The translations under genes were made by a program, and so were the position numbers. DNA of 63,405 nt, filler included, from Hyphochytrium catenoides (taxonomy: Eukaryota; Protista; Hyphochytriomycota): the NCBI GenBank assembly GCA_900088475.1. It is 8 parts of 8 records of this genome, joined end to end, with 100 filler letters (N's around TTAATTAATTAA, not from the genome) between each part and the next. Parts side by side here need not be neighbours in the genome. Positions count along the whole stretch, not along the records: positions 1,330 to 27,635 come from FLMG01002934.1; 7 more parts are not named here. One strand, 5' to 3'. The notes under the pieces are model-generated. The model saw nothing but the letters and a program-made list of their open reading frames with translations. It did no database searches and was not told the origin of the DNA. Shown here piece after piece: positions 26,900 to 27,185 of this stretch (positions are counted from its first letter, which is position 1; each line of letters begins with the position of its first letter).

Positions 26900-27185
26900 T
26901 CGTGACACTAAATTACCTCTGTTCCACCACTCAATCTACCTACTTGTTCAGGTGGCGTCATCATTGTCGCGGCGGGAGGTGATGAGAGGACTTCGCCGGT
27001 GTTGGTCCACCGTGTGTCGAAAGTTCCTCAAGCATCACCTCGTGTCCCGAGACGTGAATGCGGCTCGGAATATCCTCCGCTTCGTTCGTTCCAATGAAAG
27101 GCCATTTTCGCTAAAGCGCAAGAAGAAGGTGGTGAGAAAGAGAAAGGCAGCTGCTTCACCTCCGGTTGCCACCACGCCGTGGTAA
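26900..27185 (+). mobile_element. Fanzor/TnpB-family nuclease C-terminal fragment (zinc-finger half plus RuvC-III), probably a truncated relic
   Basis: RGLRRCWSTVC...VSRDVNAARNILRFVRSNERPFSLKR. RDxNAAxNI is the TnpB/Fanzor RuvC-III signature; the RGLxxC..C and RPxxLxR flanks are typical of eukaryotic Fanzor. RuvC-I and RuvC-II were not found. Confidence 0.8.

Follow-up and report, generated by a model that had tools for sequence, protein, structure and literature searches.

The window analysed here is a stretch of 63,405 nucleotides, filler included, from the genome of Hyphochytrium catenoides. The locus under study lies in one piece of it (positions 1330-27635), on which the following genes were recognized:

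5182-8844, minus strand: hybrid histidine kinase (GAF-HisKA-HATPase-receiver-PAS), 1,219 aa, intronless
13995-17435, plus strand: GH2 beta-mannosidase, 1,146 aa, intronless
21022-23951, plus strand: chitin synthase, distributed over several frames (introns)

Long GA/CT dinucleotide microsatellites occur in both orientations (2726-2928, 9361-9624, 18015-18129 and 18524-18750), and a run of N, an assembly gap, lies near 9355. Beyond the chitin synthase, the piece is gene-poor and repeat-rich up to its end, and this stretch holds the short coding fragment, or stub, described below. With a chitin synthase, a hybrid histidine kinase and a GH2 mannosidase as its neighbours, this stub stands in the eukaryotic context of a chitin-making, fungus-like organism. 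Its features and those of its flanks are:

26580-26951, plus strand: repeat-family DNA upstream of the stub, apparently non-coding (high-depth variant contigs; no Fanzor1-profile match)
26952-27185, plus strand: Fanzor1-type relic coding fragment, the final ~77 codons and the stop (matches of protein P0001 and of the family HMM)
27000-27017, plus strand: second zinc knuckle C-x4-C (C-W-S-T-V-C), with R-G-L-R-R before it (family alignment and SpuFz1 alignment)
27048-27077, plus strand: RuvC-III motif R-D-V-N-A-A-R-N-I-L, whose catalytic Asp is encoded at 27051-27053
27099-27146, plus strand: R-P-x-S-L-x-R motif, then a K/R-rich tail; R-P-x-S-L is conserved in the family
27186-27587, plus strand: 3' flank, candidate omegaRNA/right-end region, of which 27398-27587 is common to the main variant of the repeat
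27588-27635, no strand assigned: first part of another repeat, of extreme abundance, at which the Fanzor-relic repeat ends on the right in this copy

Translation of the plus frame at 26940-27185 gave the peptide quoted in the earlier note, where it was described as hidden in a degenerate tract. This description was confirmed. The peptide is enclosed in an ORF at 26715-27185 (plus strand) that ends with a TAA stop at 27183-27185, and only short ORFs were found in all frames of 24000-26950. A Pfam search with ten ORFs of 24000-27635 returned no match and no transposase domain. Similarity to other proteins begins inside the ORF, at 26952 (a Val) when compared with P0001 and at 26970 when compared with the family profile.

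Fanzor1 proteins are eukaryotic homologues of TnpB (Bao & Jurka 2013, PMC3627910). The match to a TnpB/Fanzor profile that the earlier note led us to expect was not obtained directly. The Pfam model Cas12f1-like_TNB (PF07282) reached 13.5 bits with the peptide (E 0.085, for a cut-off of 26.3), over its last 18 positions only, and neither the NCBIfam search nor a phmmer search of the PDB with the peptide alone returned a match. An exhaustive phmmer search of the ORF against 1.84e9 representative proteins led to a single JGI-metagenome entry, P0001. This protein shares 61% identity with the window over 74 aa, with a single one-residue in-frame gap (E 5.7e-14), begins exactly at the Val homologous to 26952, and scores 15.6 bits against PF07282 (cut-off 26.3). 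A word-indexed search added P0002, which passes the PF07282 cut-off with 33 bits and finds 26943-27119 of the window by tblastn (E 2.9e-8); P0002, P0010, P0011 and P0013 all score between 32 and 35 bits against this model (cut-off 26.3). Searches from P0002, then from a four-sequence profile, gathered 53 proteins, all of them metagenomic and labelled only as unnamed or 'hypothetical protein'. In pairwise comparisons the peptide was matched by 41 of the family proteins (E<1e-3), at identities of 45-61%. Two profiles, both built without the window sequence, were then compared with the six-frame translation of the piece, and each produced a sole match: 26970-27134 for the 49-sequence, 509-position profile (45.9 bits, E 1.3e-15, over 1330-27635) and 26970-27146 for the four-sequence profile (E 2.8e-14). 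Because the Pfam score is sub-threshold and the PDB phmmer search was empty, the family membership of the stub rests on these intermediate metagenomic proteins, several of which do pass PF07282. Through them, the assignment of the peptide as a probable Fanzor1-type C-terminus is supported.

The broader earlier reading, a TnpB/Fanzor C-terminus, could be narrowed to Fanzor1. When the four-sequence profile was compared with the PDB, it matched 8GKH (1.5e-8), 9CF0 (3.8e-6) and 9CER (1.5e-3), that is, the Fz1 proteins of Spizellomyces punctatus (SpuFz1), Parasitella parasitica and Guillardia theta, and nothing else at E<1. The mimivirus Fanzor2 (9B0L) reached E 0.08-0.16 only. Moreover, the family is eukaryotic, since the genes beside a relative, P0004, on locus L002 are of Mob1, LAMTOR3-like, myotubularin and synergin type. 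A scan of viral contigs gave no match.

The longer family members contain a RuvC-I motif (A-I-D-P-G-R-x-N), the string E-L-S-A-P-T-T and a first knuckle (V-D-E-[YF]-x-T-[TS]-K-x-C-x-x-C), and the C-terminal pattern of the family consists of R-E-V-R-G-L-R-R-C-x-S-T-x-C, N-R-D-x-N-A-A-x-N-I-L-R-C and an R-P-x-S-L-S-R end. From R-E-V onward the stub peptide follows this pattern, the C-x4-C spacing included. The R-G-L-R-R-C-x-S-T-x-C block is present in most rows of the family alignment, and the stub knuckle at 27000-27017 lines up with the equivalent knuckle of SpuFz1; the C-x4-C spacing is a family trait and not a mark of decay. Further on, the string S-R-D-V-N-A-A-R-N-I-L occupies 27045-27077, and the RuvC-III motif within it aligns with the end of Cas12f1-like_TNB, with the RD motif of the family and with a bacterial TnpB (L001:5208-6263). 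The C-terminal motif takes the form R-P-F-S-L-K-R in the window, and the K/R-rich run covers 27114-27146.

We then asked how much of a Fanzor1-type gene is left. Profile positions 399-453 of 509 are all that is present in the window. At maximum sensitivity, HMM positions 1-398 matched nothing in any frame of 1330-27635. RuvC-I in its family form and RuvC-II are absent from the six frames of this 26-kb piece, and tblastn of the window with the bacterial TnpB, P0001 and P0002 found the C-terminal stub alone. The first zinc knuckle is also absent, and the frame upstream of 26952 reads as unrelated sequence. The zinc-finger Cys pair that the earlier note placed before the RD motif is the second knuckle only; the first, CxxC, knuckle is not present. 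The blank upstream of the stub is meaningful because the same family profile recovers HMM positions 10-471 across frameshifts in two other loci, L005 and L006. Since the RuvC-I Asp, RuvC-II and the first knuckle are absent, the copy cannot be a nuclease, in agreement with the earlier view of a non-functional copy lacking RuvC-I and RuvC-II. Everything upstream of the second knuckle is missing, namely the WED and REC parts, the Asp of RuvC-I, RuvC-II and the CxxC knuckle, and a copy so reduced can neither fold into an RNA-guided nuclease nor act as one. The motif that defines the TnpB/Fanzor superfamily reads D-X(125,275)-[TS]-[TS]-X-X-[C4 zinc finger]-X(5,50)-RD (PMC3627910). In the stub, the C-x4-C knuckle is followed within 5-50 residues by R-D (27048-27053). 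Judged by this motif, the window copy is a piece of a superfamily member and not a member that works.

To describe the repeat status of the locus, contigs of X1, X2 and X3, three DNA runs from the organism itself, were placed on 25600-27635 at a likeness of at least 80%. In run X1, 282 contigs fell on this interval, 96 of them at 99% likeness or more, 104 at 95-99%, 52 at 90-95% and 30 below 90%. Over 26105-27173, and bearing in mind that the depth of contigs reflects copy number only roughly, depths were as follows:

Run X1: exact contigs ~210, variant contigs 6,300-6,800
Run X2: exact contigs ~19, variant contigs 420-550
Run X3: exact contigs ~5.5, variant contigs 78-90

Variant contigs are ~15-30x deeper than exact contigs, and ~95x deeper over the coding fragment. 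The repeat family around the stub has tens of copies in the organism. These multi-copy variant contigs, found in the organism's own DNA runs, mean that the genome hosts or hosted a Fanzor1 family, as had been suggested for this lineage. Within the window itself no second copy of the stub was found, only GA/CT microsatellites and short chance pairs. Inside the stub, the main variant differs from the window by a single 3-nt deletion, which drops an extra Met and restores R-E-V-R-G-L. Among the listed substitutions, those at 27066 and 27137 are synonymous, and the remaining listed changes are F>V and FS>EE. To the left, the main variant departs from the window upstream of 26580, and to the right it does so again at 27587; in run X3, a high-depth contig of 3.3 kb spans 26580-27587 and extends 2.1 kb to the left of 26580. 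Contig ends at 27587 and 27592 are loose and mark the left edge of the abundant terminal repeat, which takes up the final ~50-60 bases of the piece; in the bin 27572-27635 the summed depth of run X1 is ~255,000, against ~210 for exact single-copy contigs.

Altogether, we consider it very probable that 26952-27185 (plus strand) is a pseudogene fragment of Fanzor1 type, made of the last 60-77 codons and embedded in a multi-copy repeat. The homology, the truncation, the eukaryotic context and the multi-copy status of the stub were all demonstrated. The multi-copy repeat is the signature of a past or present family of Fanzor1-carrying transposons. As for its origin, we propose that a once complete Fanzor1 element underwent deletion or rearrangement, which would have left the present fragment, and that its 3' flank may once have encoded a guide RNA.

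A more ambitious reading is that the genome contains a Fanzor1 sub-family, live and so far undescribed, with tens to ~100 copies and a C-terminal K/R-rich NLS, and that the locus is the right-end remnant, coding stub and guide-RNA module together, of a non-autonomous derivative on which intact copies could still act in trans; we regard this as unlikely. The earlier note called the tail of the peptide NLS-like. A K/R-rich tail is indeed present and common to the window and P0001, but the remaining family members do not have it. This tail may have acted as an NLS. NLSs are predicted in about 60% of Fanzor ORFs, and those tested experimentally were N-terminal (PMC10530073), whereas the tail of the stub is C-terminal.

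A related possibility, which we hold to be quite unlikely, is that the stub belongs to the right-end module of a non-autonomous Fanzor1 derivative, composed of the 3' stub, an omegaRNA and the transposon end, and still served in trans by intact copies. In its favour, no part of the repeat is more abundant than the stub. At 26980 the summed depth in run X1 is ~20,000 in four contigs, ~3x that of the upstream flank (~6,800); more copies therefore share the stub than share the flank. This contrast in depth opposes 26892-27095, the stub, to 26580-26890, the upstream repeat DNA. The extra copies or sub-families that share the stub without its upstream flank could be more complete copies. The end of the repeat at ~27587, with another repeat beyond, also suits a right-end module. 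Against it, in place of 27173-27398 of the window the main variant has ~240 other letters, the first 225 nt after the stop being unshared. The folding of 27100-27590 is mildly better than that of shuffled sequences (z -2.4), but that of 27398-27590, the block common to the main variant, is no better than shuffles (z -0.67), and an Rfam scan gave no relevant match in the 3' flank. None of these results supports an omegaRNA at the right end, and none refutes one. No convincing terminal repeats or TIRs, and no definable target-site duplication, were found around the one copy examined. Elsewhere in the piece, at 25393-25449 (plus strand), Rfam reported a sub-threshold match to the archaeal C/D-box RNA sR2 (24.4 bits for a gathering threshold of 42, E 0.017), which is probably a chance match.

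A pseudogene fragment is also a better description than a final exon belonging to an intact Fanzor1 gene with introns, the upstream exons of which would be diverged, short or located beyond a long intron. Introns are frequent in Fanzor genes (PMC10530073). The letters 'ttcag' lie immediately 5' of 26952, the position at which P0001 starts with its homologous Val, and could, with their final 'cag', serve as a splice acceptor. Moreover, the main variant and the window differ at 26679-26825 by eleven indels of 1, 2, 1, 3, 4, 3, 3, 2, 2, 2 and 1 nt, most of which are not multiples of 3, and the sole indel inside the fragment is of 3 nt. Nevertheless, the exons would have had to escape a profile that left HMM positions 1-398 unmatched in 1330-27635 and yet found them across frames in L005 and L006. 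The upstream 3 kb contains no ORF >123 aa and no Pfam match, and family members read through the position of 26952 without an intron. With no match to HMM positions 1-398 in the piece, we set this interpretation aside as very improbable.

Comparison with the bacterial systems bears on the idea that the stub is a piece of bacterial TnpB, acquired through contamination or recent horizontal transfer. The bacterial TnpB of IS200/IS605 type (L001:5208-6263) is 51% identical to the stub over 47 aa, and the two share the string R-G-L-R..W..C..C...R-D-V-N-A-A-R-N-I-L..F.R-S..R-P. This match had been pre-selected, however, by the pattern R-D-V-N-A-A-R-N in a metagenome scan, which that generic pattern saturated and which yielded this TnpB alone. 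As the identity includes residues past RuvC-III, the end of the superfamily must be highly conserved, and the TNB zinc ribbon together with RuvC-III points, at the level of sequence, to a common ancestry of the stub and bacterial TnpB. In contrast to the stub, bacterial proteins have a CxxC second knuckle and lack the S-T-x-C spacing and the S-L-x-R end of the family. Unlike IS200/IS605 elements (Pfam OrfB_IS605 and Cas12f1-like_TNB), the stub lies in a eukaryotic context with no TnpA or IS ends. Its C-x4-C knuckle and R-P-x-S-L end fit the Fanzor1-type family much better, with 45.9 bits as against 13.5 for the general TnpB-type Pfam model. The stub also shares its contig with the chitin synthase, and the organism's reads contain it repeatedly. 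A bacterial origin, which we find extremely improbable, is rejected on this family fit, on the contig and on the repeats in the reads. Finally, although the Pfam match alone is not significant, the chance occurrence of such a motif in non-coding DNA has a practically nil probability and is refuted by the family-profile matches and by P0001, with E 1.3e-15 to an independent profile over 55 residues and a 61%-identical homologue among 1.84e9 proteins.

The stub, as a Fanzor1-type relic, can be compared with the characterized systems. With the Fanzor1 proteins (8GKH, 9CF0 and 9CER) it shares the h-G-L-x-x-C linker, a second knuckle with a wider Cys spacing, an N-R-D-type RuvC-III motif and a basic R-P-x-x-x-S-R end, as well as a multi-copy presence in a eukaryotic genome. 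Fanzor1 proteins have ~500-650 residues, whereas ~60 survive in the stub, and REC/WED, RuvC-I, RuvC-II and the first knuckle are lost. Identity with SpuFz1 is low, and the sub-family P0002-P0050 is therefore distinct from the characterized Fanzor1 orthologues. Fanzor2, represented by the mimivirus ApmFz2 (9B0L), has the TNB zinc ribbon and the RD-x-N-A-A-x-N-I-L motif in common with the stub, but its profile match (E 0.081-0.16) is much weaker than that of Fanzor1.

Fungi and many other eukaryotes are well known to carry Fanzor1 genes as well as decayed copies of them (PMC3627910, PMC10432273, PMC10530073), and up to 122 Fanzor copies per genome were reported among 3,655 unique sequences (PMC10530073). 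Because such genes and decayed copies are so widely known, the stub is of little importance by itself. The window copy is an ordinary dead transposon relic, and a stub of 60 residues is without activity. Its value is that of a pointer, in that the genome holds a multi-copy Fanzor1 family, of a sub-family represented here by unnamed or hypothetical metagenomic entries alone. Intact copies may exist elsewhere in the genome, as the earlier note suggested, and these would then rank as ordinary candidate RNA-guided nucleases of compact, eukaryotic type. Moreover, one conserved motif, picked out by eye, was a true positive here where Pfam alone would have rejected the stub. Near-complete copies of the sub-family, covering HMM positions 10-471 and broken over several frames, occur at L005:5301-6534 and L006:475-1711, which come from two NCBI assemblies (GCA_024449855.1 and GCA_003358065.1); in L006, a DctP-type, bacterial-like gene adjoins the Fanzor1-type copy.
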